From the sequence record OQ718158.1: DNA of 64,000 nucleotides; one strand, given 5' to 3'. The position numbers and the translations under genes were made by a program. The notes under the pieces are model-generated. The model ran no database searches. It saw only the letters and a program-made list of their open reading frames with translations, and was not told the DNA's origin. This document shows, one piece after another, positions 23,170-47,968 of the stretch (position 1 is its first letter; every line of letters starts with the position of its first letter).

Positions 23170-23207
23170 TAAAAAATCCAGTACTATAATAGTACTGGAT
23201 TAATTTT
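23170..23207. terminator. bidirectional terminator between convergent blocks
   Basis: A-tract TCCAGTACT-ATAAT-AGTACTGGA T-rich. Confidence 0.75.
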
Positions 23208-24330
23208 AATTATCTAAGCCACCAATTACACTGAACTGTGTGGTAACGTCTGAACTATTATCTATGTAAGTTCTTCGACCAACATAATATAGTTGTCCTT
23301 TTGCTTGAATAAAAGTTACGGTCCCTGTATTGAATGTTATAATATCATTGTATGTAATGTCAGGTGGTAGTGCTGCTGATAATGCAGTAACAGCACTTAA
23401 TGCAGCACTAGCACTACCATTTATACCAGCAGCAATACTACCAGTACCATAGAACTTATTATCTTTACCAATGAATACGTTGGCTGATGCTTGTGTAGCT
23501 GATGTTATTGCCTTACCAATTTGGAATGCGGTTCCTATGGTGTATGGTGTGCTCCTGGCTGCGTCTATGCTTTGTGTATATCCATCCCCTAGCTGACCAT
23601 TAACTTTGTCACCACATGAGTATAGAGTACCATTGAGGCTGTATATGATCCCACGGTTAGAGAAGCTAACAGCTTCTGCATTAGTCCATACTGGTGCGGT
23701 GTATGAGTTTACACGACTAGCGGTAGTTCCTAGACCTAGTATACCATATGTGTTATCACCACATCCAAACCATTGTCCAGAACTGTTTTGATAGAACACT
23801 GAACGTTCTGTTGATTCCATGCGTACAGCATCCACAGCACCACTTTTAACGAACGAAGTGGATGAGGATGTAGTACCAGTACCCAATGCACCATAAGTGT
23901 TTGTACCAATCGCATAGATTGATCCTAGTGGTGTCATAACACGTATGCAGTTATATCCCAATTGAACTTTACATTCAAATAGGTTGTCCCATATTTCAGG
24001 AACAGCAGAAAATAAATTTGTAATTTCGAACCATGATGTTGTCGAACCAGTTAATCCTATACTGCTTTTGTTTCCTAAAATGAAAACAGTTTTGTCCTTC
24101 TTAATTATCCATGATGATAGAAAGCCTATCTCACAGCTATGAACATTTGATTCGATTTGGGTAATATAATACTTAACGGTGTTATCACCCATAAATGCCG
24201 CAGCACCAGATGCAAAAAGGTTTCCAGTTTGTTTATTTAAAATGTAGTTATTGTTTCCATATACACTAACATCATAAGAACTTTCTTGTTTTTCGTTCCC
24301 ATAATCAAATAACAATACGAAAGGTAACAT
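23206..24330 (-). CDS. RCC1/BLIP-II-like beta-propeller, MLPF-leader family
   Basis: Leader MLPFVLLFDYGN; G.N.YG.LG.G repeats. Confidence 0.85.
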   Translation of the reverse strand: MLPFVLLFDYGNEKQESSYDVSVYGNNNYILNKQTGNLFASGAAAFMGDNTVKYYITQIESNVHSCEIGFLSSWIIKKDKTVFILGNKSSIGLTGSTTSWFEITNLFSAVPEIWDNLFECKVQLGYNCIRVMTPLGSIYAIGTNTYGALGTGTTSSSTSFVKSGAVDAVRMESTERSVFYQNSSGQWFGCGDNTYGILGLGTTASRVNSYTAPVWTNAEAVSFSNRGIIYSLNGTLYSCGDKVNGQLGDGYTQSIDAARSTPYTIGTAFQIGKAITSATQASANVFIGKDNKFYGTGSIAAGINGSASAALSAVTALSAALPPDITYNDIITFNTGTVTFIQAKGQLYYVGRRTYIDNSSDVTTQFSVIGGLDN

Positions 24331-24407
24331 GATAAAATCTCCTTGTGTTATACTTTATTTAATCATTTTATAATGTACAATTTTACAGCGATTTAATTGA
24401 GGTACTC

Positions 24408-25058
24408 ATGAATAAAAGAAGTAAGTTCTATCAAGAATATTTCACTAAACAGAAACGATTCACAAAAAAATACTTTACATCATCCCACCGACCAGTTGCA
24501 AGTTACAAACGTCCTAATACTAACTATCTTACTGGTGGCAAGTTTAGTGCAAAGTTCGAATTACTTATGCGTGAAAAGAATATCAAGATGCATTACGCAG
24601 AGACAAGAAAAAACTCATCAATTATTTGTTCTGATTTTCTTGAGTACGGTTGCTTAACTTATAAATTCAATGATGTATATTTGTATATTGATGTTGATTG
24701 TAACAGTACTCGTATGTTTGAGATTTCAATTCACCCAAATCACAACCGTTATATAAACATTAACTTGGTTGATAAAGTACTGATTGGTATATCTAGTACT
24801 GATGGTGGTGGATTTGAATTTATTGCTTCAAAATATGATGAAGATTTCGTACTTTACCCAGTACTTGATGATGTGAAAGATATTCTCAATTCATTAAAAG
24901 GAAGTCAATACAAATTATCTGAAGAACAGCTATTTCAGTACTCACTTATTCATGATGATATCGAGATATACTTAGAGTGTGCGAGAATCTTGGAGTATCT
25001 TTATAATGAACTAACAACAACTGGTAAAGTGACAGCATTCACATTATATAATATGTAA
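24408..25058 (+). CDS. basic N-tail protein, EE-x-FQ-x-S family
   Basis: LSEEQLFQYSLIH; opposite strand inside propeller array. Confidence 0.8.
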   Translation: MNKRSKFYQEYFTKQKRFTKKYFTSSHRPVASYKRPNTNYLTGGKFSAKFELLMREKNIKMHYAETRKNSSIICSDFLEYGCLTYKFNDVYLYIDVDCNSTRMFEISIHPNHNRYININLVDKVLIGISSTDGGGFEFIASKYDEDFVLYPVLDDVKDILNSLKGSQYKLSEEQLFQYSLIHDDIEIYLECARILEYLYNELTTTGKVTAFTLYNM

Positions 25059-25091
25059 AAGAAAAAGCCAGTACATAGTACTGGCTTTATA

Positions 25092-26225
25092 TTAAACTGG
25101 TGGAGAATTATATGGCTCAAATTTATAAGTTGTCGTAGCAGTACCAGCAATGGCGTTGTTAGCTAGTATGTACATAGTCCTATAGTCGATTACTACCACA
25201 GTAATACTACCACCAAAAGCATAGTCTGTTATGTTATTAGTGTTGAATGGTAAATTAGATGAACTGGTCCATGTATTAGCTGTTGTGCTATTTGTACCAT
25301 TGGAATAGCCGACACTAGATGCACCAGTTGTCCATAAGTTTCCATCATTGAACAACGATACATGGTTAGCTGTATATGATTTATTAGGTATAGAACTATC
25401 AATTGGCGTATTCCAAACTTTAGTAACCCATGTTGTGACGGCTGTATTATTAGTAACACCATTACCTAACGAACCATTTATTGGTATACCTCTTATATAA
25501 GAAGTGTTAGTACTAGGGTCAACATATCCAAATGTATATGTATCAAATGCAAATTGAAAACAATCAGAACTCGGTAATGTGTACAGTAATGTATATGAAG
25601 ACGTGATTATTGATGAATTTGTACCGTTCACGCCTTGGTATAAAATACCACTACCCAATATTTGATTATTATTTTTTGTTATAGCAGTCATAGATGGATA
25701 TGTTTTTACTTCACGCACATCATTAGTTACATATGTTTGTGTTGATAATGCAACATTACTACCATTACCAATAACACCTGTATTTGCACCGCTTCCATAA
25801 AGTGAACCATCATTCAAAAGTACCATTGTGGCATTACTATTTCCAGTAATTGTTTTAATATTACTAACATCCACCGCAGCAAATACAGTTGATGTTAAAT
25901 CAGTGAAACGTGTATAATGTGATGTTGTGCCATTGATTGGTGTCGCAAAACCAGAATACAAAATTCTATTTTCTTTGGTAATAAGGAATGTTCCAGTAAC
26001 ACCGTTTGAATGGATATCAATAATATTATCGCCCATTAATACCCAATCACTTACGAATGTTGTACCAGCACCCAACCCATATGTCGTATTGTATCCACGT
26101 CCATACACTCTACCATCACTGAGTAATGTTACCACACATTGACCACCACCACCAAGGATAACTTTTTGGATAGTACTCTTTACTTTTATATTCCCGTACT
26201 TAACCATTCTTGCAAAAGGTAACAT
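25092..26225 (-). CDS. RCC1-like beta-propeller, MLPF leader
   Basis: MLPFARMVKYGN; DGRVYGRGYN..YGLG. Confidence 0.85.
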   Translation of the reverse strand: MLPFARMVKYGNIKVKSTIQKVILGGGGQCVVTLLSDGRVYGRGYNTTYGLGAGTTFVSDWVLMGDNIIDIHSNGVTGTFLITKENRILYSGFATPINGTTSHYTRFTDLTSTVFAAVDVSNIKTITGNSNATMVLLNDGSLYGSGANTGVIGNGSNVALSTQTYVTNDVREVKTYPSMTAITKNNNQILGSGILYQGVNGTNSSIITSSYTLLYTLPSSDCFQFAFDTYTFGYVDPSTNTSYIRGIPINGSLGNGVTNNTAVTTWVTKVWNTPIDSSIPNKSYTANHVSLFNDGNLWTTGASSVGYSNGTNSTTANTWTSSSNLPFNTNNITDYAFGGSITVVVIDYRTMYILANNAIAGTATTTYKFEPYNSPPV

Positions 26226-26295
26226 AATTCCCTCCTTTATTCTTTATACTATATTTAATCAAAAAGAAAAGCCAGTACTCTGTACTGGCATTATT

Positions 26296-27456
26296 TTAAA
26301 TTGGTGAATCTTCAACAAATATAGTACTAGCAGTACCACCAGATACTAGGTTAGTACCACTTGAATATATTTTGTTTCCATCTGTCATATATGTTTTACC
26401 ATAGCAACTTTGGATTTTAACATCTTTGAAATTCAAATCAGGAGTAATAGATTTAGTGTAAGTTAATACGTTAGTAGTTGAACCTGTACTTAATTGTCCA
26501 TAGTATGAAGTCGCTGAGTTATTACCAGCAACGTATACACCTGTGTCAGTAATAACAAAGTTAGAGTAATATCCGTACCCATATCCTATATCTAATATAT
26601 TTCCTTGTGGTTGATTTGCCACAACAGTTGTCAATATGTTGGTTGATGCTGCTGTATTAGTAGCAGCCTGTCCATATGATTGGTCACCACCAGTATACAC
26701 AGTAACAACAGACGTACTATTGTTTCTAGCAATACCTTGAACCATACCATTAACAGTACTTATAAATGCTATAGTACTAACAGTTGCTGGTAATCTATCT
26801 GATAATGCGAATACATTATAAAAACTCACGGTTGAAGTACTGTTAGTATCACCCTTAACTTCACCTGTGTAATATAGTCTACCACTTTCGGCAATAAACG
26901 AACACATGTTTATACCTGCAATAATCCTTTTCGGAACCGCACCACTTGGTATAATTGATTGTACTAAAGTAGAGAAACTGTTAGAATAAGAAGCATTCCC
27001 AAGCTGCCCTCCTGTGTTATAACCACCACTCCAAATTGTCCCATTACTCATAAGTATTGAAATGAAGTTATTCCCTAGTGATATTTCTGAAATTGTTCCT
27101 TGGGAATTAACTTGATTAATAACAGTTTGCATAGAAGTCCATGCATTAACAGATGATGTACCCATACACACATTGTATTGTCGCCCTGTGTATTGATATG
27201 TACCATCTGATTTGTGAATCATTGTAGCATACTGACCACACCATACATCAATGACATCCGATGCAGTTACTGTCCATGATGTTCTGGTTGTATTGTCTCC
27301 TAAACCCAACTGACCACTTGAATTGGAACCACGGGTATATAATTTACCATTACTACCCAATACCATAACCCAGTTATACCCTGCAACTAATTTTTTAATG
27401 GCAGCAGGGGATGGTGCAATGTTCCCGTAATCAAACAATCTTACAAAAGGTAACAT
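26296..27456 (-). CDS. RCC1-like beta-propeller, MLPF leader
   Basis: Start moved to 27456; GKLYTRGSNSSGQLGLG. Confidence 0.9.
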   Translation of the reverse strand: MLPFVRLFDYGNIAPSPAAIKKLVAGYNWVMVLGSNGKLYTRGSNSSGQLGLGDNTTRTSWTVTASDVIDVWCGQYATMIHKSDGTYQYTGRQYNVCMGTSSVNAWTSMQTVINQVNSQGTISEISLGNNFISILMSNGTIWSGGYNTGGQLGNASYSNSFSTLVQSIIPSGAVPKRIIAGINMCSFIAESGRLYYTGEVKGDTNSTSTVSFYNVFALSDRLPATVSTIAFISTVNGMVQGIARNNSTSVVTVYTGGDQSYGQAATNTAASTNILTTVVANQPQGNILDIGYGYGYYSNFVITDTGVYVAGNNSATSYYGQLSTGSTTNVLTYTKSITPDLNFKDVKIQSCYGKTYMTDGNKIYSSGTNLVSGGTASTIFVEDSPI

Positions 27457-27469
27457 TTTTTTCTCCTTA

Positions 27470-28618
27470 TTATATTGATGGCATATCCAACACATATGAG
27501 TTGCTAGTAATTGATGAATATGTAGAATTTAAACCTGTACTATAAACATAATCACCTGCCCATAAGAATGTTCTATCCAATGTTGTATGTATTTCAATAT
27601 CATCATATGATGATAATGATATTTGTGCTAGTGTATATGTAGTAGCATCAATGTTTGAACCAATACCCAAAGTACCATTGTATTGTGATTGGGAGTTTTG
27701 ACCAGTTGCATATATACCAGATTTGGTTATTAAATGCTGATTGTACATTGACGTACCTTTAAACAATTTAATTAAATTAGAGTTAGGTGTAGTTATTGGT
27801 GCAGGAGCAAGTATTGTTGTTGTAGTGCCACCATCACCTAATTGTCCATATCGTTGGTAACCACCAGCGTATACCTGTTTAACTCCAGCCGTAGTTTCAA
27901 TAATAAAGAATGAACCATAGCCAGTAGTATTAAAGTCTATAATTTTATTTGTACTCAAACCAACATTATATCTAGTAAATGTTGTTGCATTTGCTGAACC
28001 ACCAGCATTCCCACCTACCATTTGCCCACTATAATAAAATGCTCCAGTACTGTCAGTATAAGCCATACAGTTCTCACTACCATAGATTTTTACTGGTGTA
28101 CTGGGGAAACTAGAGGTTATATTCACACATGTATTATATTTTGCAGTAGTTCCAGTAATTTCACCATTGTTGTTTTGCCCAATTACCCAAACTGTGTCAT
28201 CCGAACGTATAGCCATTGAGCTATAAAACGAGGATACAAATTGTTTAATAAAGGAACCAGGGAGAGAAGTAAGCATACTATTGATTTGTGCACTCACATT
28301 GGTCCATGTATTCACAACTGAATTGACACCTGCGGCTGCACCTGAACCAGAACTCCACCATGATTCATCATTCTTTTTAATCAATGTACCATTAGCAGAG
28401 CAATAAACATCAGCAACTGAACTATTAACTAATATCCATGCCCTCGCTGCTGTTGTATTACCAGTACCTAGCTGTCCTGCTGCATTACTACCCTTAGCAT
28501 ATAAATCTCCATTCTGCGTTAAAAGCATAGCATGTTGGTATCCAGTTGACAATTTCTTTATTTTTGGTAATGCTGGTGCTTCATTTCCATAATCAAACAT
28601 TCTAACAAAAGGTAACAT
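27470..28618 (-). CDS. RCC1-like beta-propeller, MLPF leader
   Basis: GDLYAKGSNAAGQLGTG. Confidence 0.9.
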   Translation of the reverse strand: MLPFVRMFDYGNEAPALPKIKKLSTGYQHAMLLTQNGDLYAKGSNAAGQLGTGNTTAARAWILVNSSVADVYCSANGTLIKKNDESWWSSGSGAAAGVNSVVNTWTNVSAQINSMLTSLPGSFIKQFVSSFYSSMAIRSDDTVWVIGQNNNGEITGTTAKYNTCVNITSSFPSTPVKIYGSENCMAYTDSTGAFYYSGQMVGGNAGGSANATTFTRYNVGLSTNKIIDFNTTGYGSFFIIETTAGVKQVYAGGYQRYGQLGDGGTTTTILAPAPITTPNSNLIKLFKGTSMYNQHLITKSGIYATGQNSQSQYNGTLGIGSNIDATTYTLAQISLSSYDDIEIHTTLDRTFLWAGDYVYSTGLNSTYSSITSNSYVLDMPSI

Positions 28619-28689
28619 AATTCCCTCCTTTATTCATTATACTATATTTAATCAAAAAGAAAAGCCAGTACTCAAGTACTGGCATTATC

Positions 28690-29868
28690 TTAAAATTGTG
28701 GTAGTTGGTATTCAGTTAATGTCCATGTACCTGTAACTGTTCCATTCGGGGACATCCCTGTGTAGTATAATTTGCCACCAGCGTATACAAATAATGCATT
28801 GTCATTAGCAGCAACCATCGAAGTTTCTGGATCAAATACTACAGAAATTGGTAATTGTGATTGAACAAATACTGACGCATTGGTAGTTGAATTGTTACCA
28901 AGTTGTCCATAGTTGTTATACCCAGTACTGAAAATACGGCTACCATTTCTATATAATATACCCCTAGTACTTTGTGAATGTAGATCTATAAATTCAAAAT
29001 CGGAAACATTAGTTAATTGCAAATAAGTACTTTGTGGAGTTAGTGCTGTCTTATTCGTATTGGTTGTAACTCCATTACCTAATTGACCGTAAAATTGTGA
29101 TCCTAAACCATATAGCGGATAAGTACCATCTGAATAAAGAACTATACCCAACATCTTATTATGTGAAAGAATATCTATTGGATATTTCCCTGTACCAAAG
29201 TCGTATCTAGTCCAAGACGTTAATGTAGCCGACGCTGCCCCAGTTAACAAAGTACCAGTGGTAGTTGTGCCACATCGCCACGCTGAATTATCATTCTTAA
29301 TTATCCAAGTTGGACTATTAAAAAATGAACTAACCTTTTTAACATTAATATTGACCTGGGTTAATTCTGTAAGCATTGATGAACTTGAACCCAACTCATA
29401 TGTGGAGTTATTACCTATTGCATAAAGAACCCCACTATTTGTTAGTACAAACAAATTACGAACATTAGGATATATCTCTTTAATATCATCAATATTAATA
29501 CCCGAAAAATAAGAAGTACATTCCACAAAGGTAGTACTTTGTACTTCACTCGATGCACCTGTCCAGGTGTTCCATCCTGCATAATAAAATTTATTATCAT
29601 TAGTCTGTACTAAGCTATATGAAGAGTTCCTAGTGCACCAGAAATTTTTCACATTTTGCATTAATCGAACCCATGATGTCTGTGTTGTAGTATTACCCAG
29701 TCCGAAAATACCAGCATTGTTTCCACCGATACCCCACAAATCACCGTTACTATACTGTAGCATCAATGTATTGTTGGTGAACGCTGATGGTGCTTGCATT
29801 TTAATTACATTAGCTGATGGTGCAGGTTTAATATTCCCGTACTTAACCATTCTTGCAAAAGGTAACAT
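28690..29868 (-). CDS. RCC1-like beta-propeller, MLPF leader
   Basis: MLPFARMVKYGN; TGYNNYGQLG. Confidence 0.9.
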   Translation of the reverse strand: MLPFARMVKYGNIKPAPSANVIKMQAPSAFTNNTLMLQYSNGDLWGIGGNNAGIFGLGNTTTQTSWVRLMQNVKNFWCTRNSSYSLVQTNDNKFYYAGWNTWTGASSEVQSTTFVECTSYFSGINIDDIKEIYPNVRNLFVLTNSGVLYAIGNNSTYELGSSSSMLTELTQVNINVKKVSSFFNSPTWIIKNDNSAWRCGTTTTGTLLTGAASATLTSWTRYDFGTGKYPIDILSHNKMLGIVLYSDGTYPLYGLGSQFYGQLGNGVTTNTNKTALTPQSTYLQLTNVSDFEFIDLHSQSTRGILYRNGSRIFSTGYNNYGQLGNNSTTNASVFVQSQLPISVVFDPETSMVAANDNALFVYAGGKLYYTGMSPNGTVTGTWTLTEYQLPQF

Positions 29869-29943
29869 ATATTTTTCCTCCTTTATTCATTATACTATAT
29901 TTAATCAAAACGAAATGCCAGCACTCAAGTACTGGCATTATTG

Positions 29944-31134
29944 TTATAGTTGTCTTGGAGTATCAAGTACATATCTATTTGTACTAGGACCACCATCATC
30001 ATAAGTTCCGGTTGAATATATATTTTTCATATCAGCAGTTAGGAAAGTACGTAACGACCCTCGATATATTTTTATTTTATCATACATAGAATATGTTATT
30101 TCTGACGGCAATGGACATGCAGTAAATTTACCAATGGTAACATTAGAACCAACACCCAATGAACCAGCATAACTACTCGCATTTAAACCTGTTGCATATA
30201 CACCAGAACTCGTAACTAGTATACTAGATTGTGCTGGGTATCCAGTATGAATTGAATACAAAGTACCGGGTGGTAAGGTTGTACTATTATTTCCTAATAC
30301 TGCTCGTGCTGTACTAGACGTAGTGTTATTACCCCATGCCCCATTATTGGCGTTCCCACCCACTAGGAACTGACGTGCTCCTGTACTTGGATTCTCCACT
30401 AAAGCACTGACTGCACCAATTGTACATACAACATATTGTAATGTTTTTGTATATGTTGTACTTGGCTGATATAAAGTATATTGATTGTATGGAGTCCATG
30501 TATCAGTAGTACTTATACCTGATGTACTACCACCAATATATAAATTATTTTGTGTATCATAAAACATTACACAGCTATTTGTTGACTGTATTCGTGCAAT
30601 ATCAACATTAGGCGTGACAGCTTTTACAAATGATCCATCTGTTATTTGCTGAGTACTACCAGTACCATCAGCGAATTGTCTAGCCCCACTCCAACCAGTA
30701 CTCCATATTGTATTATTATCCATTAAGAAAGTAAACCAAGTAGTACCTGCATACATCTGTTTAATTGAAGTACCTGAACTTTGTGTGTACAAATTTTCAA
30801 TATATTGGTTATAACTTAAAAATGATGTAGTACTAGTTTCTAAACCAATATGACTACCATATCCACAATAAAAATAATTTAAGTCCTTATCTTGAACTAA
30901 CAAAGTTCCTTGTGTCATCCAGCAATCTTTGACATTTTCTCTAATTAATGTCCACGACCTTACTGCATTATTATTTCCGCGACCGAACTTCCCATAACTA
31001 TTATTTCCTCGTGCGTATAGTTGACCGTCAGTATAAAGTACAACCACATCAGTATCAGTTGGTATTATTTTCTTAATTAGAAGAGGTTCAGGTGTGATAT
31101 TCCCATAATCAAACAATCTAACAAAAGGTAACAT
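29944..31134 (-). CDS. RCC1-like beta-propeller, MLPF leader
   Basis: DGQLYARGNNSYGKFG. Confidence 0.9.
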   Translation of the reverse strand: MLPFVRLFDYGNITPEPLLIKKIIPTDTDVVVLYTDGQLYARGNNSYGKFGRGNNNAVRSWTLIRENVKDCWMTQGTLLVQDKDLNYFYCGYGSHIGLETSTTSFLSYNQYIENLYTQSSGTSIKQMYAGTTWFTFLMDNNTIWSTGWSGARQFADGTGSTQQITDGSFVKAVTPNVDIARIQSTNSCVMFYDTQNNLYIGGSTSGISTTDTWTPYNQYTLYQPSTTYTKTLQYVVCTIGAVSALVENPSTGARQFLVGGNANNGAWGNNTTSSTARAVLGNNSTTLPPGTLYSIHTGYPAQSSILVTSSGVYATGLNASSYAGSLGVGSNVTIGKFTACPLPSEITYSMYDKIKIYRGSLRTFLTADMKNIYSTGTYDDGGPSTNRYVLDTPRQL

Positions 31135-31204
31135 ATTTTCCTCCTTTATTCATAATACTATATTTAACCAAAAAGAAAAGCCAGTACTTGATACTGGCGT
31201 AATG

Positions 31205-32347
31205 TCAATAAGCTTCCCACGGTAAGGGTGTCTTCCTAAATCCATACCTGGTTGTGGTCGCACCATCACCAGCAATGTATCGACCGATACCACATTGGTA
31301 TAACTCTGTACTACTACATATAGCACCACCAATAGTACCACTACTCCACAGAATTATATTAGAATATGTTATTGGTAAATCACTACATTTAGTATATACA
31401 CCAACGGTAGCAGTCCCACTAATACCACCAAACATACTTCGGTTAGCACCAGTATAATATATACCATCTGGACTCATAAATGCAGAGGTGTAAGTTGTAC
31501 TACAATCCACTGGACTTCTTATAGTATTAAGATCGCCTGGGTATGTCCTGACACCAAAGGTGTATACATTACCATCAGTTGTAATACCATTACCTAACTG
31601 CCCACTGTTTTGTCCACCACATGTAAGCAACAATGCAGAACCAGAAACAATTGCAGTAGCATTATACGAAGTACCCATCGCAATAGAAGCACCAGACAAT
31701 AGTTTTGGAGTAACAATAGCTGTTGTATTACCCTGGCCTAATTCACCATTGATATTTCGTCCCCATGCGTATATAGAAGTTGTATCCAATCGACATAGTA
31801 CTGAACCATAACTAAACGTATATCGCATGTCAATTACCGCATTAGGCAAATTAACCTTAGTTGCAACACTAATAACACCACCAGTAACACCACTGTTTGC
31901 GTTCATGTTACGACCATATGCATATAAAGAACCATCTGAAGTTTTAATATGCATCATACCATCTGTACAATACAATGCATCTATACTATCCACTGCAACC
32001 GGACCCATACTGGTAGTTATATCGGTCCACCCAAGCGTGGTAGTACTGGAAATTAAGTTATTTCCGGCGTATAGTATTCTATTATTATTAGTAACTACAA
32101 CTGTATATCTGGCAGTAACACCAATTAATCGAACATCAGTATATATCTTAGACCACGCACCTAATGAATTGGTGTTTGCATCCAAAAAGCCCAACTGCCC
32201 ATCTGTATTGTATCCAATACCCCATACATCACCTGCACTGTCCAATAACACTTCATGTGAAAATCCAATCTTAAAATCTTTTATTGTAGGAACTACCGGA
32301 ACTGGTGCAATATTCCCGTACTTAACCATTCTAGCAAAAGGTAACAT
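31205..32347 (-). CDS. RCC1-like beta-propeller, MLPF leader
   Basis: MLPFARMVKYGN; YAWGRNINGELGQG. Confidence 0.9.
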   Translation of the reverse strand: MLPFARMVKYGNIAPVPVVPTIKDFKIGFSHEVLLDSAGDVWGIGYNTDGQLGFLDANTNSLGAWSKIYTDVRLIGVTARYTVVVTNNNRILYAGNNLISSTTTLGWTDITTSMGPVAVDSIDALYCTDGMMHIKTSDGSLYAYGRNMNANSGVTGGVISVATKVNLPNAVIDMRYTFSYGSVLCRLDTTSIYAWGRNINGELGQGNTTAIVTPKLLSGASIAMGTSYNATAIVSGSALLLTCGGQNSGQLGNGITTDGNVYTFGVRTYPGDLNTIRSPVDCSTTYTSAFMSPDGIYYTGANRSMFGGISGTATVGVYTKCSDLPITYSNIILWSSGTIGGAICSSTELYQCGIGRYIAGDGATTTRYGFRKTPLPWEAY

Positions 32348-32423
32348 AATTCCCTCCTTTATTCATTATACTATATTTAATACAAAAAAGAAAAGCCAGC
32401 ACTCAAGTACTGGCATTTTAATT

Positions 32424-33572: not shown

Positions 33573-33643
33573 ATTTCCCTCCTTTATTCATTATACTATA
33601 TTTAATTCAAAAAGAAAAGCCAGTATCAAGTACTGGCATTATG

Positions 33644-34753
33644 TTATTTTGGTAAATCAATTTTAGTAAAGACTGCAACATCCTCGCTTGCCCCTGGGAT
33701 GGCGTAATAAGAACCAGTACTATATACATCTCCGTCTTTTGTTAATATTGAAGTTAAACCATCACTAAAAAGAACATCACTAATCTCACTAACTGAAACA
33801 GGTAATTGTAAATTAGTAGCACTATATATTGCACCAGTTTGAGAATTGTTTAATCCCAAACCACGGTTCGCCCCAACACCCTTCTGATATGTACTAGTAA
33901 TTATAATTTGTGTAGCAGTATTTAATGCAGGTGAATTCGTCATAAACAACGGAGAACTATTAGGCAAAGAACTTACAGGAACTGCACGAAATGTAGTTGT
34001 ATCTGAACTAAGAAAGTTTGGCGTTTGACCACATACGAAATATGATGTACCATTATAGTAATTAAATGCATTACCACCTATAGCTGCATCTATTACTCCA
34101 GTACTACGTAATCCCCACGTGTTAATTTGTGTTCGGTTCCCCGTGCCATGCTGACCCCTGTCATTCCACCCAGAACTATATAACTTATTATCTAATGTAA
34201 TATACATACTGTCATTTGAATTCGTCATTACTTTACGCACATTAGTAGCACATTGAGTTAATGTGTAAATTGATGATGAACCAATACCTAAAGCACCACG
34301 ATATCCATTAGCCCCTGCACCATAGAGTACTGAACTAGTGCTAAGTACAAATATTAAACCATACGAACATACTATATCAGCAATTTCATTTACCGATAGT
34401 ACACTCGTAAACCACGCAGTCCTATCAACTAATACAGTACTGTAAGAAGTCCCAGTAGAAGACGAAAACCAATAAGTCTCACCAGCAGTCCATATAGTAT
34501 TGTCACTCTTAATAACAACAACTGTACGATCACCAGCAAAAAAATTAGTAACTTCTGTACTCACTAATCTCCATGAAGATACAGTGTTGGTATTACCATT
34601 TCCAGATTCACCACCTTGATTTCTACCTATGTAATATAAATCATGTGAATCAGTCAATAAGAATTGACCCTGTGTAGACGCACCAACTTTTATTATATTT
34701 TTAGGACCAGGTGTGATATTCCCATAATCAAACATTCTTACAAAAGGTAACAT
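33644..34753 (-). CDS. RCC1-like beta-propeller, MLPF leader
   Basis: LYSSGWNDRGQHGTG. Confidence 0.9.
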   Translation of the reverse strand: MLPFVRMFDYGNITPGPKNIIKVGASTQGQFLLTDSHDLYYIGRNQGGESGNGNTNTVSSWRLVSTEVTNFFAGDRTVVVIKSDNTIWTAGETYWFSSSTGTSYSTVLVDRTAWFTSVLSVNEIADIVCSYGLIFVLSTSSVLYGAGANGYRGALGIGSSSIYTLTQCATNVRKVMTNSNDSMYITLDNKLYSSGWNDRGQHGTGNRTQINTWGLRSTGVIDAAIGGNAFNYYNGTSYFVCGQTPNFLSSDTTTFRAVPVSSLPNSSPLFMTNSPALNTATQIIITSTYQKGVGANRGLGLNNSQTGAIYSATNLQLPVSVSEISDVLFSDGLTSILTKDGDVYSTGSYYAIPGASEDVAVFTKIDLPK

Positions 34754-34763
34754 ATTTCTCTCC

Positions 34764-35894
34764 TTAATTTAATAATGCCCCTGGCAAATCCACTTTGACG
34801 AATTGTGCATATGCTGAGGAATTTTGATCAAAGTTTGGTCCCAATCCATAAAATGAGCTAATGCCGTCTTCATTTGTGTATATGATATAAACGTTCTTTA
34901 CATCATTTCCGCATATAAATCGAATGTCTTTCGTTTGTGTTCCCGCTGGAACATTACGAAGGTTCACAACGCCATTACTTGCATTGTTATCAGCCGACGC
35001 AATTGGTAATTGATTTTGACCATATTGACCACGCATATTTTTTGCATCTAAACCAAACACAGTATCTGATACCGCACCAACTTTCAAAAATGAACCAAAA
35101 CTATTATTGAATGACTTTGGAAATGTACCACTATAAACACTTCTCCCATCTGATAATACCGCTGAACTGAATTTCCCGCTATTCGATATGGCAAATTCAT
35201 TGTAAGGAAGTGTACCCATTTTGGTATATACAGAATATGAATTAGTGGAAGTATTATCAATAATCTTATTACCATTATATCCAATACCATACTGGTATCC
35301 GTCTGCATCTTGAACTATACACAAAGGACCACTTGGGGTTTGTGTCAACGAAACAACACGTTCAACTTGTATATCACCAAATGTATTTCTTCGCCATGTT
35401 CTATCTATTATAGTACTAGTATTACCCAAAGATAATGCCACACTATATAATAGATTGTTTTCAGTAAAAATGGCAACATAATATGCGTGGTTAATAACTT
35501 GCTTCATCCCAGCATCAATAACTTCCTGTGGAATATGATCAGTAACATCCAACCAATCAAGGTTAGATGATGCAATATCTGGAGTACTGAATTTGTCAAA
35601 TCTAGTTGAGCCACAAACTAGCACTCTATCATCATTTGTCAAAGCCACTGTGCTAGTCTGCATATTAGAACTGAATGATTTAACATTACTAATGTTAGAC
35701 TTGTACCAACCCTTATCAGCAGCACCCACCGTGAATCCGGTTCCCATTGATCCACTTGTACTTGTACCATAAGCCCACATCTCACCACTATATGTTAGTG
35801 CCATACAGTGGCTTCCATTTGCTTGGAAATCCTTTATACCAGTGGGAGCAACCACTGTATTCCCATAATCAAACATTCTAACAAAAGGTAACAT
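34764..35894 (-). CDS. RCC1-like beta-propeller (divergent), MLPF leader
   Basis: GEMWAYGTSTSGSMGTG. Confidence 0.85.
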   Translation of the reverse strand: MLPFVRMFDYGNTVVAPTGIKDFQANGSHCMALTYSGEMWAYGTSTSGSMGTGFTVGAADKGWYKSNISNVKSFSSNMQTSTVALTNDDRVLVCGSTRFDKFSTPDIASSNLDWLDVTDHIPQEVIDAGMKQVINHAYYVAIFTENNLLYSVALSLGNTSTIIDRTWRRNTFGDIQVERVVSLTQTPSGPLCIVQDADGYQYGIGYNGNKIIDNTSTNSYSVYTKMGTLPYNEFAISNSGKFSSAVLSDGRSVYSGTFPKSFNNSFGSFLKVGAVSDTVFGLDAKNMRGQYGQNQLPIASADNNASNGVVNLRNVPAGTQTKDIRFICGNDVKNVYIIYTNEDGISSFYGLGPNFDQNSSAYAQFVKVDLPGALLN

Positions 35895-35971
35895 AACTAA
35901 TTCTCCAAATTCAAATAATTATAATGTATTTACAAAAAAAATACCAGCACATATTTCAGTACTGGTATCAT

Positions 35972-37153
35972 TTATGGTAAAATGATAGATTGTAACGAAC
36001 TCATACCCAATGCTGGAACACTAGCCTGTGGTGCTGGAGAATTCAATTTTGGTGATGAAACCGCATATGACATTCCTGAACCCAAATCTGGATCAAAAAC
36101 TACAGCACAATAATTCCCACTATATATAAGTCCATTCTTGTATCCTTGTGCACTTTGAATGCATTTCGTGAACGTACCAATATCTGTAGTGGCATTTATT
36201 AAGTTCCTCCCACGATAACCGCAGGTGTATATGAAATTATCATCGCCTATGTACATACTAGAATCCCCAGAAGAACTACATAGATACGACATATAAGCAC
36301 GCATGTTTTTAGGAGCAACTGACAATGTACCTGCATAGAATTTATTATTCGAACCCGTAATATCACCATCACCCAATGCACCAAAACTTCCCCAGCCAGT
36401 ACCATAATATCTCTTATCACTCAAGAATATAATACAGTTGTTATTACACATCTTGACTTGATATATCAATGAAGGATCAACCCCAGGGAATGATTCAGTG
36501 TATGTTAGAACAGCCAGATCAGTACTAGCATTACATTGATGATATGTATTAGTACCAGCGGACAAGATTGTTCCATTAGCTAACAGAATTCTCGCAGTAC
36601 CAGTACCAGCAGTACAAGCAACTGCACTTCCTGCACTTCCGGTGTATATTTGTCTGAAAGTAAAGAAACCAACAGTTTTACTTCCCTGCCCACTCCAACC
36701 AGTATTATCAACTCCACACGCCCATACTGAACCATCTTGCATGATCATCATTACACCAAAGCGTTCTATTGAAATATAAACAATCTTCGTTGTATCAACT
36801 GCACTAAATCTAGAAGTTATATCAGTCCATACCTTAACACTTACCGCCGTCGCACTGGAAGTAGGATCTTCACCAGCTATCATTATCCTCCCATTGTTAG
36901 TAAGATACATTGTCTGACTATAACCAGTACTACAAAACTTAACACTATCAGTCTCTGGAACTTTTAACCACTCGTTGTAACGTGTTACGTTAGTGTTATT
37001 ACCTAACTGATAATAGTTATTCATCCCAGATACATATAACACACCATCCTTTATTAAACTATAAGTCGCACTATAGTCACTACAGGTATAACGTGTACCC
37101 ACAGGTCGCTCAACGACGTTCCCATAATCAAACATTCTAACAAAAGGTAACAT
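35972..37153 (-). CDS. RCC1-like beta-propeller, MLPF leader
   Basis: DGVLYVSGMNNYYQLGN. Confidence 0.9.
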   Translation of the reverse strand: MLPFVRMFDYGNVVERPVGTRYTCSDYSATYSLIKDGVLYVSGMNNYYQLGNNTNVTRYNEWLKVPETDSVKFCSTGYSQTMYLTNNGRIMIAGEDPTSSATAVSVKVWTDITSRFSAVDTTKIVYISIERFGVMMIMQDGSVWACGVDNTGWSGQGSKTVGFFTFRQIYTGSAGSAVACTAGTGTARILLANGTILSAGTNTYHQCNASTDLAVLTYTESFPGVDPSLIYQVKMCNNNCIIFLSDKRYYGTGWGSFGALGDGDITGSNNKFYAGTLSVAPKNMRAYMSYLCSSSGDSSMYIGDDNFIYTCGYRGRNLINATTDIGTFTKCIQSAQGYKNGLIYSGNYCAVVFDPDLGSGMSYAVSSPKLNSPAPQASVPALGMSSLQSIILP

Positions 37154-37226
37154 AATAAAATCTCCGTAATTAAATTATATAGTATTTACAAAAAATACCA
37201 GTACATATTTCAGTACTGACCTATTA

Positions 37227-38348
37227 TTAAAAGGGCAACGGTAACTCAGTAAAAGTACTTACGTCCGGTAAACCATACATTGAATTAGCATCACCACAGT
37301 AATACCACTTCGTAGAATCATGTACCACCGATAAACGCTGTGCACATAACACTTCCTGTATGTCATTAAACACCATCGGGACTAACTCATATGTATCCGC
37401 AAATGAAGATACACCACCACTCGCATGAAAAGTATTCGTCCCAGCATAAAATAACTGATTAGTGTTCTTACCCACAGCAAATGTCATCAATATCCCATCA
37501 TTCTCCCATAAAGAAGAAAACTTATCAACACTACCAGAAAGCTCTGTGTAAGTACTCGTAATGGCACTCGCAGCCGCCGCATTACCCATCTGTTTATTCA
37601 AGTTCTGTCCAGCAATAAAATATCTCGTGCGTGCACTAGAATCAGTATATAATAACCCAGTGTTCGTAGTCATCATTCCAATGTCCTTAATCGTCATACC
37701 AGTCTGTGAATAACTTAGATACGAAGTTAAACTACCATTATTACCCAACGAACCGTTATCACTCATGCCACAACGATGTAATATACCACTTGTATCAACG
37801 TAGATAGTACTAACTAAACTCGTATACAACTCTTGTACATTATTCGCAATAAACACAGCAGTCGCCTTATTACTAACCCCACCAAATGATAGGTTATTAT
37901 CAAATCCCTTAGCGTATAATTGATTATTAGTAGTCAATAATCCAATCGTGAAATAAGACATTTTCATATCCCTTACTGTACTCAAATCTACTGCCCCAAA
38001 TTGGTGCGTAACATCTGTCCATGTGAAAATCTGTGCACTACCAACACCACCCGTTTCAAACCATTTGTCACCACAGTACAATATGCGATTACCCTTAGTA
38101 AAGATAACTGTTACCAATCCACTACCACACGCAAACTTTACATCACTTCTAACCTTCGTCCAATCAAGTACATAGGTAGTGGTGTTATTACCTATACCTA
38201 ACTTGCCATAACGGTTATAACCACGCACCCACAAATCACCACTCTTAGTAATTAATAGTAATGCGTCTCCTGTACTTATTATTCGAAATCCCGAACTAGG
38301 ATCAGGTACTTCATTTCCATAATCAAACATTCTAACAAAAGGTAACAT
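37227..38348 (-). CDS. RCC1-like beta-propeller, MLPF leader
   Basis: GDLWVRGYNRYGKLGIG. Confidence 0.9.
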   Translation of the reverse strand: MLPFVRMFDYGNEVPDPSSGFRIISTGDALLLITKSGDLWVRGYNRYGKLGIGNNTTTYVLDWTKVRSDVKFACGSGLVTVIFTKGNRILYCGDKWFETGGVGSAQIFTWTDVTHQFGAVDLSTVRDMKMSYFTIGLLTTNNQLYAKGFDNNLSFGGVSNKATAVFIANNVQELYTSLVSTIYVDTSGILHRCGMSDNGSLGNNGSLTSYLSYSQTGMTIKDIGMMTTNTGLLYTDSSARTRYFIAGQNLNKQMGNAAAASAITSTYTELSGSVDKFSSLWENDGILMTFAVGKNTNQLFYAGTNTFHASGGVSSFADTYELVPMVFNDIQEVLCAQRLSVVHDSTKWYYCGDANSMYGLPDVSTFTELPLPF

Positions 38349-38421
38349 ATATCCCTCCTTTATTCATTATACTATATTTAATCAAAAAAGAAATGCCAGT
38401 ACTCAAGTACTGGCATAGTAT

Positions 38422-39549
38422 TCAAAAAGGTAAATCAATTTGCTTAGTAATAATAGTATCTAACGGTATTGAACACAATGAGAAATTCTTTCCACCCGTA
38501 TTTTCAGGATTATATCCATTCATCCATACATTATTACCTTCGTAAAATGTATTCCAGTATAAAGACCCACTATATCGTGTATTCGAATTGAACGATGTAA
38601 AATTGAATTCTTGAAATGCTGTAAAATATGGAAGGGAACTTGAACTACTTCCCGTAAATGGGGTATGCCCAGTTGCTATTAGTTTGTTTGTATCTGCATT
38701 AATTAAAAATACAACACTAGTCGAATAGTCCAACGAATCAGGATGATATATATTACTCATATCACCTATAGTAAAACCAACATCAAAAACTTTACTATGT
38801 GCACCACTACCAGCAAAAGTAGTTCCAGTTGCATATATTTTATTATCAGATGTTATCATTACAAAACCAACACCAGAAACAAAACTGCATTTTATATCAT
38901 AAGATATATCATCAAACAACGGAACAAATGTGGTTGCATCACCCGATGTTGCTTTAACTTGAAAGCTGTTATTTGAACCTGAACCATATACAGTTCCATC
39001 GTTTTTAATCTTAAACAATGTATCGCCAAGGTAACCGCCAAATATATTATCCACATTAGTGTCAAGTACAGTCCACGCTGAAACATAATTTTTATGTCCT
39101 AAACCTAATGTACCACTTCGATTCCATCCTCTTCCATAAAGTGTTCCGTCTTTCATTAATATAAATGCTGTATAACCACATAACATTTTTTTAATTTGGG
39201 TAACATCTATACCAGTGAAATACACAGCCCAGTCAGTATATCCTTGTTGGAAAGTATTAGAATTCGTGAATGCATATGTTGAACCTGAACCATATATTTT
39301 ATCACCTTTAATAACAACGGAAAACGATCCTAACCATAAGTCATCAACTTCAGTTGTGATTTGTTGAACTGCTCCTAACGATACAAACTGTGTACTTAAA
39401 CCCGCATTATAGTTTGAATCTTCACCGTGTGCATATACAGTGCCATCTTGCATTAGAAACATTTCAAGAGTGTAACTAACAACACTTTTCTTTATATTAT
39501 TAACTTCGATTATATTCCCATAATCAAACATTCTAACAAAAGGTAACAT
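38422..39549 (-). CDS. RCC1-like beta-propeller, MLPF leader
   Basis: DGTLYGRGWNRSGTLGLG. Confidence 0.9.
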   Translation of the reverse strand: MLPFVRMFDYGNIIEVNNIKKSVVSYTLEMFLMQDGTVYAHGEDSNYNAGLSTQFVSLGAVQQITTEVDDLWLGSFSVVIKGDKIYGSGSTYAFTNSNTFQQGYTDWAVYFTGIDVTQIKKMLCGYTAFILMKDGTLYGRGWNRSGTLGLGHKNYVSAWTVLDTNVDNIFGGYLGDTLFKIKNDGTVYGSGSNNSFQVKATSGDATTFVPLFDDISYDIKCSFVSGVGFVMITSDNKIYATGTTFAGSGAHSKVFDVGFTIGDMSNIYHPDSLDYSTSVVFLINADTNKLIATGHTPFTGSSSSSLPYFTAFQEFNFTSFNSNTRYSGSLYWNTFYEGNNVWMNGYNPENTGGKNFSLCSIPLDTIITKQIDLPF

Positions 39550-39618
39550 AATTCCCTCCTTTATTCATTATACTATATTTAATCAAAAAAAGCCAGTATC
39601 AAGTACTGGCATATTAAT

Positions 39619-40767
39619 TTACTGCAAAAATGACATATCGACTTCTGTATAATTAAGAACGTTCTGTCCAGAAATACCACCCATTACTACTATTGCAAGG
39701 CCACAATAATATAATTTTCCAGTATCAGTAAGTATAAGTGAACCAGATGGGGTGCGTACCAAATTACAAGAGGTATTAAACGAAGTATATGAAGGAGTAT
39801 AGGAGTACTGATTAATATTATTACCAACACCTAATTGACCAGACGCGTTGCTTCCAGATGCATAAAGTACTTCATCACCTTTAACTATATGTGATGCCAT
39901 GTTACCAACACAAGTATATAAACTATAAACACCTGCACTCAATAATGTGGGGGTTTTATATTGTATATCAGTAGAAGAGGAAGTACCACCTGTACCAAAT
40001 TCGTTCCCATATTGTGCACCGAACTGTTTACCACAAGCGTACAAATTATTATCCGATTTGATAAAAAATGTACTCTGATAACTTACATTAAAATCTATAA
40101 CATCCGAAGAAATCATCGTCACCCCAGTAATAGAAGTTTGATTACCCGTGCCCAACTGGTAGTAATAGTTAAAACCACAACCCCATAAAGTATTATCTTC
40201 TCGCAAATAAATGTTACCAACTGCCTTTTTAACCGAAGTTATAGTATCTACTCTTTTGAATGTGTTAAAAGAATTAATGTTTGTGCCATCACCAAATGAT
40301 GATATGTTCGATATATTGTTAGCTCCACAACAATACAATGTACCATCGTTTGTTATCAAATTCACCTTCATATCATAAAAACTACTCATGTATTTTATAT
40401 CAGAAACATTAATACCACTTGATGTTATCCACGTAGTACAGTCCGTCCACAAAGTTTTTCTATCAGTTACACCAGTGAATGCCTTCGTGTTACCAGTGAT
40501 AAAAACTTTTCCAGTACCTTTCTCTTCATACAATTGACAATCACTACTGTTATCTTCCAATAGAACTCGTTTAACATTCTCCGCACAAAGAATAAATTTA
40601 CTCGATGCTACACCTGTACCAGTACCCCAATTCGTCGCAGAAGATGCATACAACTTATCAGTATAAGTATCATGAAGATACATAGAATCACTGGAATATA
40701 TTTTAAAACGCCCAGAGTTGGTAGGTGCTTCATTCCCATAATCAAACATTCTTACAAAAGGTAACAT
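39619..40767 (-). CDS. RCC1-like beta-propeller, MLPF leader
   Basis: LYASGSNASGQLGVG. Confidence 0.9.
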   Translation of the reverse strand: MLPFVRMFDYGNEAPTNSGRFKIYSSDSMYLHDTYTDKLYASSATNWGTGTGVASSKFILCAENVKRVLLEDNSSDCQLYEEKGTGKVFITGNTKAFTGVTDRKTLWTDCTTWITSSGINVSDIKYMSSFYDMKVNLITNDGTLYCCGANNISNISSFGDGTNINSFNTFKRVDTITSVKKAVGNIYLREDNTLWGCGFNYYYQLGTGNQTSITGVTMISSDVIDFNVSYQSTFFIKSDNNLYACGKQFGAQYGNEFGTGGTSSSTDIQYKTPTLLSAGVYSLYTCVGNMASHIVKGDEVLYASGSNASGQLGVGNNINQYSYTPSYTSFNTSCNLVRTPSGSLILTDTGKLYYCGLAIVVMGGISGQNVLNYTEVDMSFLQ

Positions 40768-40779
40768 ATTTCCTCCAAA

Positions 40780-41685
40780 TTATTTAAAAACATACTGCGT
40801 ATTAACACGTGTCCCGTTGTCGTAACCAAGTACGTAAAATATTTCAGCACTATTATTAGAGCCAAATAATGCACCAGTACTATTACTCAACGTTGTATTG
40901 ATAGCTAATGGTATCCATTTGTTTTGCTCGGCATCATATTTTAATAAATTTAATGCACCATAAGATACTGCATATATACCTTTGTCATATCTATTGTAAA
41001 TTATCTTACTAGGGTTAGCTCCACCAACTGCTGCCATTCTTGACCAAACCGCACTCTCTATGTGATATTTTTGTGCAGGAGTAGATCCTTGTCCTGTAAA
41101 ATATATGTAAGTACCATCAGTGCACATATCACCACCACCATTGTTTGTTGTATTCCCAGTAGTACCTAACGATGTCCATGTATTAGTACTCGGCGTATAA
41201 CTATATAATGCAGTATTAGACGGTGAACCCCACAAATATATCTTATCCCCTGTAGTAATCATCTTACTATATACTGCCTGGTTAGGTTTGCCAACACTTG
41301 TATTATTCAGTGTCCATGTATCAGAGCTTATGTCATATACATAAAAATTATTATTAGCAACATTCGCTGCACCTAAACCACCGAACAAATATATTTTTCC
41401 TTGATAGGCACACAATGCACTTCCATAGGTGGATACTGGTGGTGATGATAATTGTACCCATATTCTAGAATTTAAATTAAAACTCCATAACTGATTATCC
41501 TGGTTCGAAGTATTCATTATACCACCAAATATATAAGCAGTATTTCTTGATGCATCATACGTATAACCAAAGTTATTTCGTGCTGAAGGTACTGGTGATG
41601 TGGTAAATTGAGTTCGTATACCACCATTTGGGGCTGGTAATGGAGCTTCATTCCCATAATCAAACATTCTAACAAAAGGTAACAT
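40780..41685 (-). CDS. Kelch-repeat beta-propeller with the same MLPF leader
   Basis: Start moved to 41685; R-NFG...YIFGG, IYLFGG, YD...W Kelch repeats. Confidence 0.9.
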   Translation of the reverse strand: MLPFVRMFDYGNEAPLPAPNGGIRTQFTTSPVPSARNNFGYTYDASRNTAYIFGGIMNTSNQDNQLWSFNLNSRIWVQLSSPPVSTYGSALCAYQGKIYLFGGLGAANVANNNFYVYDISSDTWTLNNTSVGKPNQAVYSKMITTGDKIYLWGSPSNTALYSYTPSTNTWTSLGTTGNTTNNGGGDMCTDGTYIYFTGQGSTPAQKYHIESAVWSRMAAVGGANPSKIIYNRYDKGIYAVSYGALNLLKYDAEQNKWIPLAINTTLSNSTGALFGSNNSAEIFYVLGYDNGTRVNTQYVFK

Positions 41686-41733
41686 ATTTCCTCCTTTATT
41701 CATTATATCATATTTACCCCATAAACAAAACCC

Positions 41734-41762
41734 TTGACATCCTTTCAGTACTGGTGTACTAT
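41734..41762 (+). promoter_or_regulatory. sigma70 promoter for micro-ORF array
   Basis: TTGACA-17-TACTAT. Confidence 0.65.
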
Positions 41763-41787
41763 AGAAGGAATACAAGGAGAACTACAC

Positions 41788-46898: not shown

Positions 46899-47146
46899 GT
46901 AATCATATGTAGTCATAAGTAATCATATATAAACATTTAAGTAATCATTTATAATCACTGTAGTGATCAGTAGTGAGTACTAGAGTGTAATAGAGTACAG
47001 GAATGTGCACGTTTAATCAAGAACGTAGCAGTACTGATATGTCACTAAAGTAGGCAGAGGAAGTCTGCCGTACTTTGTAGTTTCCAAGCTCCTTTTCCAT
47101 TTTGCAAATTACATCAAATGTAATCAAAAGTAATCAAAAGTAATCA
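46899..47146 (+). repeat. 10-bp phased GTAATCA repeats
   Basis: 46899, 46909 (GTAGTCA), 46919, 46941, 46951 (ATAATCA); 47120, 47130, 47140. Confidence 0.75.
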
Positions 47147-47840: not shown

Positions 47841-47968
47841 GTCTGGAAGTAAAGATGGCTATCCATCTAGACGGCTAAACGGCTAGATTTCTGGATGGCT
47901 AGATGGCTAGACGTTTGGACGGCTAAACGGCTAGATGGTTACACGTCTGGAAGTATAGACGGCTAAAT
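47841..47968 (+). repeat. 16 tandem degenerate octamers (consensus GGCTAGAY)
   Basis: GGCTA at 47857, 47873, 47881, 47897, 47905, 47921, 47929, 47961, all in one 8-bp phase. Confidence 0.85.

Follow-up and report, generated by a model that had tools for sequence, protein, structure and literature searches.

Fifteen neighbouring genes of an Escherichia jumbo phage begin with one and the same 12-residue leader, and this leader is probably a retained virion-docking tag for interchangeable accessory binding heads. The window (the whole 64-kb stretch of DNA analysed) is identical to bases 310001-374000 of the 378,573-bp genome of phage vB_Ec-M-J (OQ718158), an Asteriusvirus, i.e. a RaK2-like jumbo myovirus. 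Dozens of phage genomes label these genes 'regulator of chromosome condensation' or 'DNA condensation protein', which steers thought to packaging. Our evidence speaks instead for a virion-loading tag that is common to the phage family, independent of the fold and attached to binding-type domains. New here are the identity of the fifteenth body, a Kelch propeller, and the occurrence of the leader on at least ten body families across related phages.

A shared leader heads divergent bodies

We found that all 15 open reading frames (ORFs) of the array, on the minus strand between 23206 and 41685, start MLPF[V/A][R/L][M/L][F/V][D/K]YGN, as an earlier note on this DNA had claimed, and that a Shine-Dalgarno sequence precedes each leader start. 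A six-frame scan of the window returned the motif at the 15 array starts and nowhere else. The two leader subtypes and the degenerate copy described in the note were recovered as MLPFARMVKYGN (three genes), MLPFVR(M/L)FDYGN (eleven genes) and MLPFVLLFDYGN (one gene), and the proline-rich linker said often to follow them amounts to one to three prolines at residues 13-22 in 12/15 proteins. Beyond the window, scans of the first 50 kb of vB_Ec-M-J and of its 50-kb structural region showed no leader-like motif (~215 kb of the genome unscanned), and a pattern scan of IMG/VR showed none outside the array of 121Q.

Pairwise identity is 58-100% (median 92%) across the leader versus 21-32% (median 27%) across the bodies, in agreement with the high body divergence reported before. 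The near-identity of the leader codons also held, with a mean pairwise DNA identity of 0.83-1.0 across the leader; this value is ~0.5 in the 40 nucleotides upstream and ~0.3 (background) past +40. The bodies had all been read as RCC1/BLIP-II-type propellers, and this stands for 14 of them, which match PF25390, PF00415 or PF13540 in Pfam, and fails for the fifteenth (40780-41685), which matches PF24681 (E = 9.7e-27) and six other Kelch models. The best PDB sequence matches of an RCC1 member were UVR8, HERC1, RPGR and RCC1, and PDB sequence searches with one RCC1, one Kelch and one LamG-like member found no solved phage structure.

The leader is not a hydrophobic Sec signal, as proposed, in that it has 12 residues with R6 and D/K9 in mid-peptide and no hydrophobic stretch. 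A Sec, Tat or lipoprotein signal peptide was ruled out by composition (no h-region of at least 10 residues and no Cys).

The leader occurs on at least ten body families in related phages

We surveyed the leader with a degenerate DNA pattern over IMG/VR followed by a peptide filter, and added annotated arrays. The survey yielded 67 non-identical full-length proteins, all from 348-378-kb RaK2-like genomes (121Q, phAPEC6, CBB, GAP32, BF, XbC2 and uncultured contigs), whose bodies fall into at least ten BLAST clusters; a strict DNA pattern had matched only 121Q and BF in IMG/VR, and the loosened pattern gave the wider set. Among the clusters are RCC1, Kelch, RCC1+Kelch fusions (667-688 residues), Laminin_G_3, phrog_4474 (glycine-rich) and phrog_6011, and most of the domains are all-beta and of a binding type. 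The idea of a constant tag on a variable domain, put forward for the propellers of the window, thus extends to unrelated bodies.

The arrays of 121Q and phAPEC6 also contain a glycine-rich protein of 244-245 residues with the leader, and Serratia phage BF has a leader-bearing member of PHROG 6011 ('virion structural protein') of 221 residues. In CBB, the genes of the syntenic array (CBB_548-554) and CBB_536/537 all start MLPF...Y(G/A)N, and the proteins of both groups are Kelch, Laminin_G_3 or unassigned (215-285 residues). In Xanthomonas phage XbC2, 11/11 consecutive array genes start MLPFP (202-688 residues; RCC1, Kelch, LamG and others).

Several annotations and borderline members were noted along the way. 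Two XbC2 genes (OP292654; L006, 5481-6647 and 8927-9553) keep MLPFPIIS and have lost the Y-G-N tail (MLPFPIISNTNI and MLPFPIISKTTI); they may be decaying, or the first eight residues may suffice. In phAPEC6 (MK817115; L050, 2434-3543, 6063-7253, 7325-8059 and 3506-4810), three leader genes lack an annotation, the call of 'gp004' runs across the glycine-rich leader gene in a wrong frame, and the annotated start of gp002 lies 36 codons 5' of MLPF. Cronobacter phage CR9 (a 152-kb member of the Vequintavirinae; L049) encodes an RCC1-like protein (9620-10786, minus strand) that adjoins 'tail fiber protein 2'; its start, MFPIPALTLTGG, bears a faint resemblance to the leader, and the N-terminus of the CR9 LamG-like homologue is unrelated.

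The leader was never found on cellular RCC1 homologues, whose N-termini are signal peptides or other sequences. When 596 Gb of genome sequence from bacteria and archaea were scanned, 110 single leader hits came up, which equals chance expectation; two of them begin long ORFs, in two Paenibacillus records, and look like false starts. Hence, judged by sequence, the tag appears to be restricted to RaK2-like phages. Literature on the motif, on RCC1/Kelch/LamG arrays and on capsid targeting in jumbo phages contained, within incomplete coverage, no description of a shared leader.

Leader proteins are present in virions and keep at least part of the tag

The earlier note had named absence from virions as an observation that would speak against docking, and we found the leader proteins present in published virion mass spectrometry of both CBB and phAPEC6. 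Mass spectrometry of CsCl-purified CBB detected 55/554 ORFs (PMC5259590). CBB has 11 leader genes (CBB_144, 247, 536, 537 and 548-554), and the products of 9 of these (CBB_144, 247, 536, 537, 548, 549, 551, 552 and 553) are among the proteins detected, a significant enrichment (9/11 versus 55/554; Fisher p = 2.4e-8). All six mass-spectrometry-confirmed structural proteins of CBB that are absent from GAP32 bear the leader. In phAPEC6, the virion 'DNA condensation' proteins gp003, 005, 006, 007, 009, 549/550 and 551 are leader genes by molecular-weight match (PMC7247149), and 7-8 leader-bearing RCC1 proteins were detected in its virions. GAP32 gp1 is likewise a virion protein with the leader.

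Two of the CBB virion proteins are encoded away from the array. CBB_144 (KU574722; L163, 2621-3385) lies between nrdD and nrdG (anaerobic ribonucleotide reductase), far from the structural modules, and CBB_247 adjoins an endonuclease VII gene. Virion incorporation thus tracks the tag and not the locus.

Three peptides recovered from CBB virions reach into the leader: LFEYANVIIPPNYK covers residues 7-20 of CBB_536, YANVIVEYATK residues 10-20 of CBB_548 and LLQYGNK residues 7-13 of CBB_553. Hence, at least residues 7-12 of the tag are kept on virion-borne proteins. A cleaved capsid-targeting sequence (CTS) of the T4 type was rejected on these peptides, which cover leader residues 7-12 or 10-12.

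Protein-level constraint and predicted structure of the leader

Conservation at synonymous sites only, without constraint on the peptide, was the other observation that had been named as telling against a docking role. We found that the invariant residues P3, F4, Y10, G11 and N12 use mixed codons across genomes: P3 is encoded by CCA (34), CCT (29), CCC (2) and CCG (2), Y10 by TAC (38) and TAT (29), G11 by GGG (36), GGA (19), GGT (8) and GGC (1), and N12 by AAT (56) and AAC (11). Within vB_Ec-M-J, synonymous variants that leave the residue unchanged occur at F4, V/A5, Y10, G11 and N12, with codons otherwise near-uniform. Residue changes are limited to leader positions 5, 6, 8 and 9. Because the invariant residues carry mixed synonymous codons, the leader is constrained as a protein, on the evidence of codon usage.

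AlphaFold2 was run for the gene 4 protein on the alignment of the 15 paralogues. The model is an all-beta propeller (predicted local distance difference test, pLDDT, 83.6; predicted template-modelling score, pTM, 0.85) that begins at residue 20, with residues 1-19 as coil at a pLDDT of ~51-68. The AlphaFold2 model of the BF LamG-like protein is a beta-sandwich, in which residues 1-15 have a pLDDT below 50. Its best PDB match is a cyanophage tailspike chain, followed by sialidase lectin domains and ConA-like jelly rolls, all likenesses at the level of the fold only (9-16% identity). The leader is therefore predicted, in both models, to lie outside the folded domain.

The array consists mostly of monocistronic, probably late cassettes

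Genes 1-14 of the array encode RCC1-like propellers and gene 15 the Kelch-repeat propeller, all on the minus strand. Gene 1 (23206-24330, 374 residues) has the degenerate leader MLPFVLLFDYGN (codons at 24295-24330). The leader MLPFARMVKYGN begins genes 2 (25092-26225, 377 residues), 5 (28690-29868, 392 residues) and 7 (31205-32347, 380 residues), and MLPFVRLFDYGN begins genes 3 (26296-27456, 386 residues) and 6 (29944-31134, 396 residues). The remaining genes have MLPFVRMFDYGN: gene 4 (27470-28618, 382 residues), the one modelled above, and genes 8 (32424-33572, 382 residues), 9 (33644-34753, 369 residues), 10 (34764-35894, 376 residues), 11 (35972-37153, 393 residues), 12 (37227-38348, 373 residues), 13 (38422-39549, 375 residues), 14 (39619-40767, 382 residues) and 15 (40780-41685, 301 residues; 'virion structural protein' in OQ718158). 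For two genes the ORF calls begin early (26296-27495 and 40780-41775), and the MLPF methionine behind a ribosome-binding site is at 27456 and 41685, respectively.

The promoter motif TAAATANNNTATA (TAAATA-N3-TATA) has 11 matches in the 64 kb versus 1.36 expected, and all 11 are on the minus strand directly 5' of array genes. They precede gene 1 (TAAATAAAGTATA, 24349-24361), gene 2 (26245-26257), gene 4 (28638-28650), gene 5 (29891-29903), gene 7 (32367-32379), gene 8 (33592-33604), gene 10 (variant TAAATACATTATA, 35920-35932), gene 11 (variant TAAATACTATATA, 37176-37188), gene 12 (38368-38380), gene 13 (39569-39581) and gene 15 (TAAATATGATATA, 41704-41716). A twelfth gene, gene 6, has the one-base variant TAAATATAGTATTAT upstream. 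The promoter is absent at genes 3, 9 and 14, which are spaced 10-13 nucleotides from the preceding neighbour (gene 9 is 10 nucleotides past gene 10, and gene 14 is 12 nucleotides past gene 15). Gene 3 lacks a promoter and starts 13 nucleotides past the stop of gene 4, so the two are probably transcribed together.

A conserved hairpin (GCCAGTAC-loop-GTACTGGC) with a T-run lies 3' of most array genes. Terminators were located for genes 1 (a hairpin at 23175-23201), 2 (25064-25088), 3 (26271-26289), 5 (28664-28683), 6 (29914-29939), 7 (31180-31198), 8 (32395-32414), 9 (33619-33637), 11 (35940-35969), 12 (37197-37220), 13 (38393-38416) and 14 (39592-39610). Hence, the array is mostly a string of monocistronic units, each made of terminator, promoter, ribosome-binding site, leader and body. 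The terminator core CCAGTAC...GTACTGG recurs after most cassettes and a similar core is present in the published CBB terminator Torf26. This hairpin looks like a terminator type common to the phage group.

In the structural region of vB_Ec-M-J, ATAAATA[TC] lies 36-42 nucleotides 5' of baseplate, hub, tape-measure and tail-fibre genes, and the tail-fibre promoter ATAAATATAGTATATA almost equals the array promoter. For CBB, the same T4-late-like motif has been listed as the structural-gene promoter, including that of orf537, 551, 552 and 553, which we recognised as leader genes. Since the promoter motif is common to structural genes of vB_Ec-M-J and of CBB, the array is most likely expressed late, along with the virion genes.

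The surroundings of the array differ in strand and gene type. Window positions 1-23169 and 42000-64000 hold tightly packed small genes of unknown function on the plus strand, where the late-promoter motif is absent, and a tRNA scan of the window found none; the plus-strand flanks are consistent with an early-gene region around a late array on the opposite strand. The sole non-array gene within the array is a plus-strand ORF of 216 residues between genes 1 and 2 (24408-25058), which has no annotation in OQ718158, matches phrog_34359 (unknown function; E = 1.2e-56) and has no Pfam match. The direct terminal repeats of vB_Ec-M-J are 21,525 bp long, and the right copy begins at window position 47049, ~5.4 kb past the array; the equivalent array of CBB likewise adjoins the terminal repeat. 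From 47049 the right repeat matches record bases 1-16000 exactly. On either side of the repeat boundary lie short tandem repeats (46899-46969, 47113-47146 and 47857-47965), which may be linked to genome-end formation.

Leaders and bodies recombine, and array content varies

The earlier note had offered a recombination handle as an alternative role of the leader, and the comparison of vB_Ec-M-J with 121Q supports this, in that orthologous bodies have different leader subtypes and upstream blocks. The body of gene 9 (33644-34753) is 85-95% identical in DNA to its 121Q orthologue (L003, 9424-10533), which has the other leader subtype and an unrelated upstream sequence with a full terminator-promoter block. 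The same swap of leader and upstream sequence was found for gene 14 (39619-40767) and its orthologue. Recombination breakpoints between orthologues thus fall at the leader. The variable leader positions have a genome-specific consensus: VRMFD in vB_Ec-M-J, ARMVK in 121Q and phAPEC6, and PQLVQ in XbC2.

As a side-effect, the conserved stretch that runs from terminator through promoter and ribosome-binding site to leader acts as a patch of homology for the exchange, duplication and loss of cassettes. With this block repeated along the array, array content therefore differs greatly between isolates: in the comparison across isolates that had been proposed as a check, a 12-kb piece of the array is covered to 80% or more by only one of 37 related records and to 15-47% by the others. 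In a recent paper, two Asteriusviruses that are otherwise nearly identical differ strongly in only a few proteins, 'chromosome condensation regulators' among them.

The heads as putative external adhesins

That an RCC1 match says nothing about DNA condensation, as the earlier note warned, fits the composition of the array proteins, which are neutral or acidic (net charge -11 to +3; isoelectric point 4.8-8.6), lack a basic tail and are rich in S/T/N/G. In other phages, such as Littlefix and PollyC, the distal, C-terminal portion of annotated tail-fibre proteins is an RCC1 propeller, and in PollyC, a Pseudomonas phage, the propeller stands behind a T7-type tail-fibre anchor domain. Adsorption of PhiKZ to some hosts requires gp298, a Kelch protein present in its virion at low abundance (PMC12676376). 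On account of the acidic or neutral bodies, the RCC1 heads of tail fibres, the tail-fibre neighbour in CR9 and PhiKZ gp298, we favour by analogy a role as accessory adhesins exposed at the particle surface.

Hair-like fibres cover tail and capsid in phAPEC6 and 121Q, close relatives of vB_Ec-M-J, and in the more distant CBB. We propose that the consensus M-L-P-F-x-x-hydrophobic-x-x-Y-G/A-N acts as a portable virion-incorporation tag, followed by a short and often proline-rich linker. The leader would become ordered on docking into a site of one common structural protein, a site that would more likely lie on the particle exterior (hair-like fibres, tail or capsid surface), and the mounted heads would form a changeable set of accessory adhesins. 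Taken further, and here we are tentative, a single peptide 'plug' could mount lectin and propeller heads (up to 15 per genome, from at least ten fold families) on a single socket, probably the hair-like fibres, to give a combinatorial adhesin coat reshuffled by recombination.

Several observations weigh against these proposals. Of the original idea that the leader docks swappable binding heads on a common virion site, virion presence and protein-level constraint stood, and the common site and its docking partner are putative. Whole-particle mass spectrometry cannot separate the outside from the inside of the particle, and the authors of the phAPEC6 study proposed an inner-body (DNA-organising) role for the RCC1 proteins (PMC7247149). 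CBB has whiskers and no RCC1 genes, which means that the hair shafts do not consist of the RCC1 proteins themselves. Each head is predicted as one globular domain, unlike the trimeric fibres typical of receptor-binding proteins. The CBB peptide report has no peptide from leader residues 1-6; such peptides are very short and their absence is uninformative, and some trimming at the N-terminus is possible. In the set of 67, M1, L2, P3, F4, Y10 and N12 are invariant partly because the search relied on them; the CBB and XbC2 arrays, known from annotation and independent of the pattern, give the same picture.

Alternative explanations

The main rival is an internal role as in T4, in which the leader would be a capsid-targeting sequence and the proteins would end up inside the capsid as inner-body or ejected proteins, maybe as injected inhibitors of host defence with a propeller or lectin as scaffold. 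RaK2-like phages have T4-like head genes that include a head maturation protease, the T4 CTS too is an N-terminal peptide of 10-20 residues on unrelated packaged proteins (PMC5694885), and phAPEC6 has an inner body for which its authors named the RCC1 proteins as candidates (PMC7247149); the low abundance of the leader proteins in virions also fits. However, the prohead protease removes the T4 CTS, whereas leader residues 7-12 or 10-12 were recovered from three CBB virion proteins. The bodies, moreover, are neutral or acidic and not basic DNA binders, their folds are typical of fibre tips and lectins, and a 40-kDa propeller would need to unfold to pass through the tail. We regard this internal role as unlikely, yet it ranks above the other alternatives. 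Less probable is that an assembly chaperone, a modifying enzyme or a protease adaptor reads the leader, in place of a structural docking site, and that the proteins enter the virion by way of their bodies. ClpS- and ClpP-like proteins are encoded by these phages: CBB has a gene for a ClpS-like adaptor, and mass spectrometry of virions detected a ClpP subunit but not the first six leader residues. Separate virion routes for at least ten unrelated body families are, however, unlikely. Met-Leu N-termini, in addition, are not expected to be substrates of methionine aminopeptidase.

Two further explanations deny the leader a docking function altogether. It could be functionless as a protein and be conserved by gene conversion along with the promoter, or it could be a nucleic-acid element for translation initiation or recombination. 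In vB_Ec-M-J the synonymous sites are indeed near-uniform (TTA 15/15, CCT 15/15 and TTT 14/15), DNA conservation continues into the promoter and ribosome-binding site, the variable positions follow a per-genome consensus, and leaders have been swapped between orthologues. Yet across genera the residues are fixed and the codons vary, non-synonymous change is confined to positions 5, 6, 8 and 9, four array genes without their own promoter block (three co-transcribed, one with the variant) keep the peptide, and so do CBB_144 and CBB_247 in unrelated contexts, so we give this explanation very little credence. Least probable of all is that the leader is a 'velcro' strand that closes the propeller ring, with YGN as a remnant of an RCC1 repeat. 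Many propellers are closed by an N-terminal strand, and FDYGN resembles the end of the RCC1 blade motif; against this, AlphaFold2 puts residues 1-19 outside the propeller as low-confidence coil, the same leader heads Kelch, LamG-like beta-sandwich and glycine-rich bodies, and cellular RCC1 homologues are without it. The velcro strand was ruled out on both AlphaFold2 models and the non-propeller bodies.

If the leader is a docking tag, it would give a handle on what the unexplained hairs carry or are anchored by, and it would account for the most variable locus between otherwise near-identical coliphages that are therapeutic candidates. It would also be a very short natural tag for protein display on jumbo-phage particles, one that could load any protein.

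Comparison with known systems

By features, not by sequence, the leader resembles the T4 CTS of the internal proteins IPI-III and of Alt, where a 10-20-residue N-terminal peptide is likewise found on unrelated proteins. The T4 CTS is sufficient for entry into the particle and is found in a hypervariable locus of a T4-related myovirus (PMC5694885). It differs in that the prohead protease cleaves it off and that it carries small, basic proteins of the capsid interior, whereas the RaK2-like leader is seen in virion peptides and carries lectin- or propeller-type domains (170-690 residues) that are neutral or acidic. Encapsulin cargo-loading peptides, which are short and usually C-terminal, dock diverse enzyme cargo on a shell protein of the HK97 fold. 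They follow the same logic of constant tag and variable cargo; the encapsulin shell is not a virus, and the likeness is an analogy only.

With eukaryotic RCC1 the array proteins share the seven-bladed propeller fold of RCC1 repeats. They differ from it in having no basic tail, and their leader and locus are common to Kelch and lectin bodies; a Ran guanine-nucleotide-exchange or chromatin function for them is hypothetical. The name 'DNA condensation' is an annotation that was transferred with the fold. PhiKZ gp298 is comparable as a low-abundance Kelch virion protein that is dispensable on the laboratory host and needed for adsorption to particular strains (PMC12676376). It belongs to an unrelated phage family with no shared leader reported, and it is likened here by description, not by sequence.

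Modular receptor-binding proteins, such as those with a T7-type tail-fibre N-terminal domain, combine a constant N-terminal anchor with a variable C-terminal module and recombine at the junction. In KP32-like Klebsiella phages, second depolymerases have a short conserved N-terminal peptide. The array proteins have the same conserved N-terminus with an exchangeable module, mosaic junctions, presence in the virion and a late-promoter motif. They differ in that the anchor has ~12 residues, that it is common to up to 15 paralogues per genome and to at least ten fold families, and that each head is predicted as one globular domain and not as part of a trimeric fibre or spike, with roles in attachment and receptor binding that are putative. 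If the docking tag is real, a retained anchor of 12 residues would join the known routes to modular phage receptor-binding equipment.

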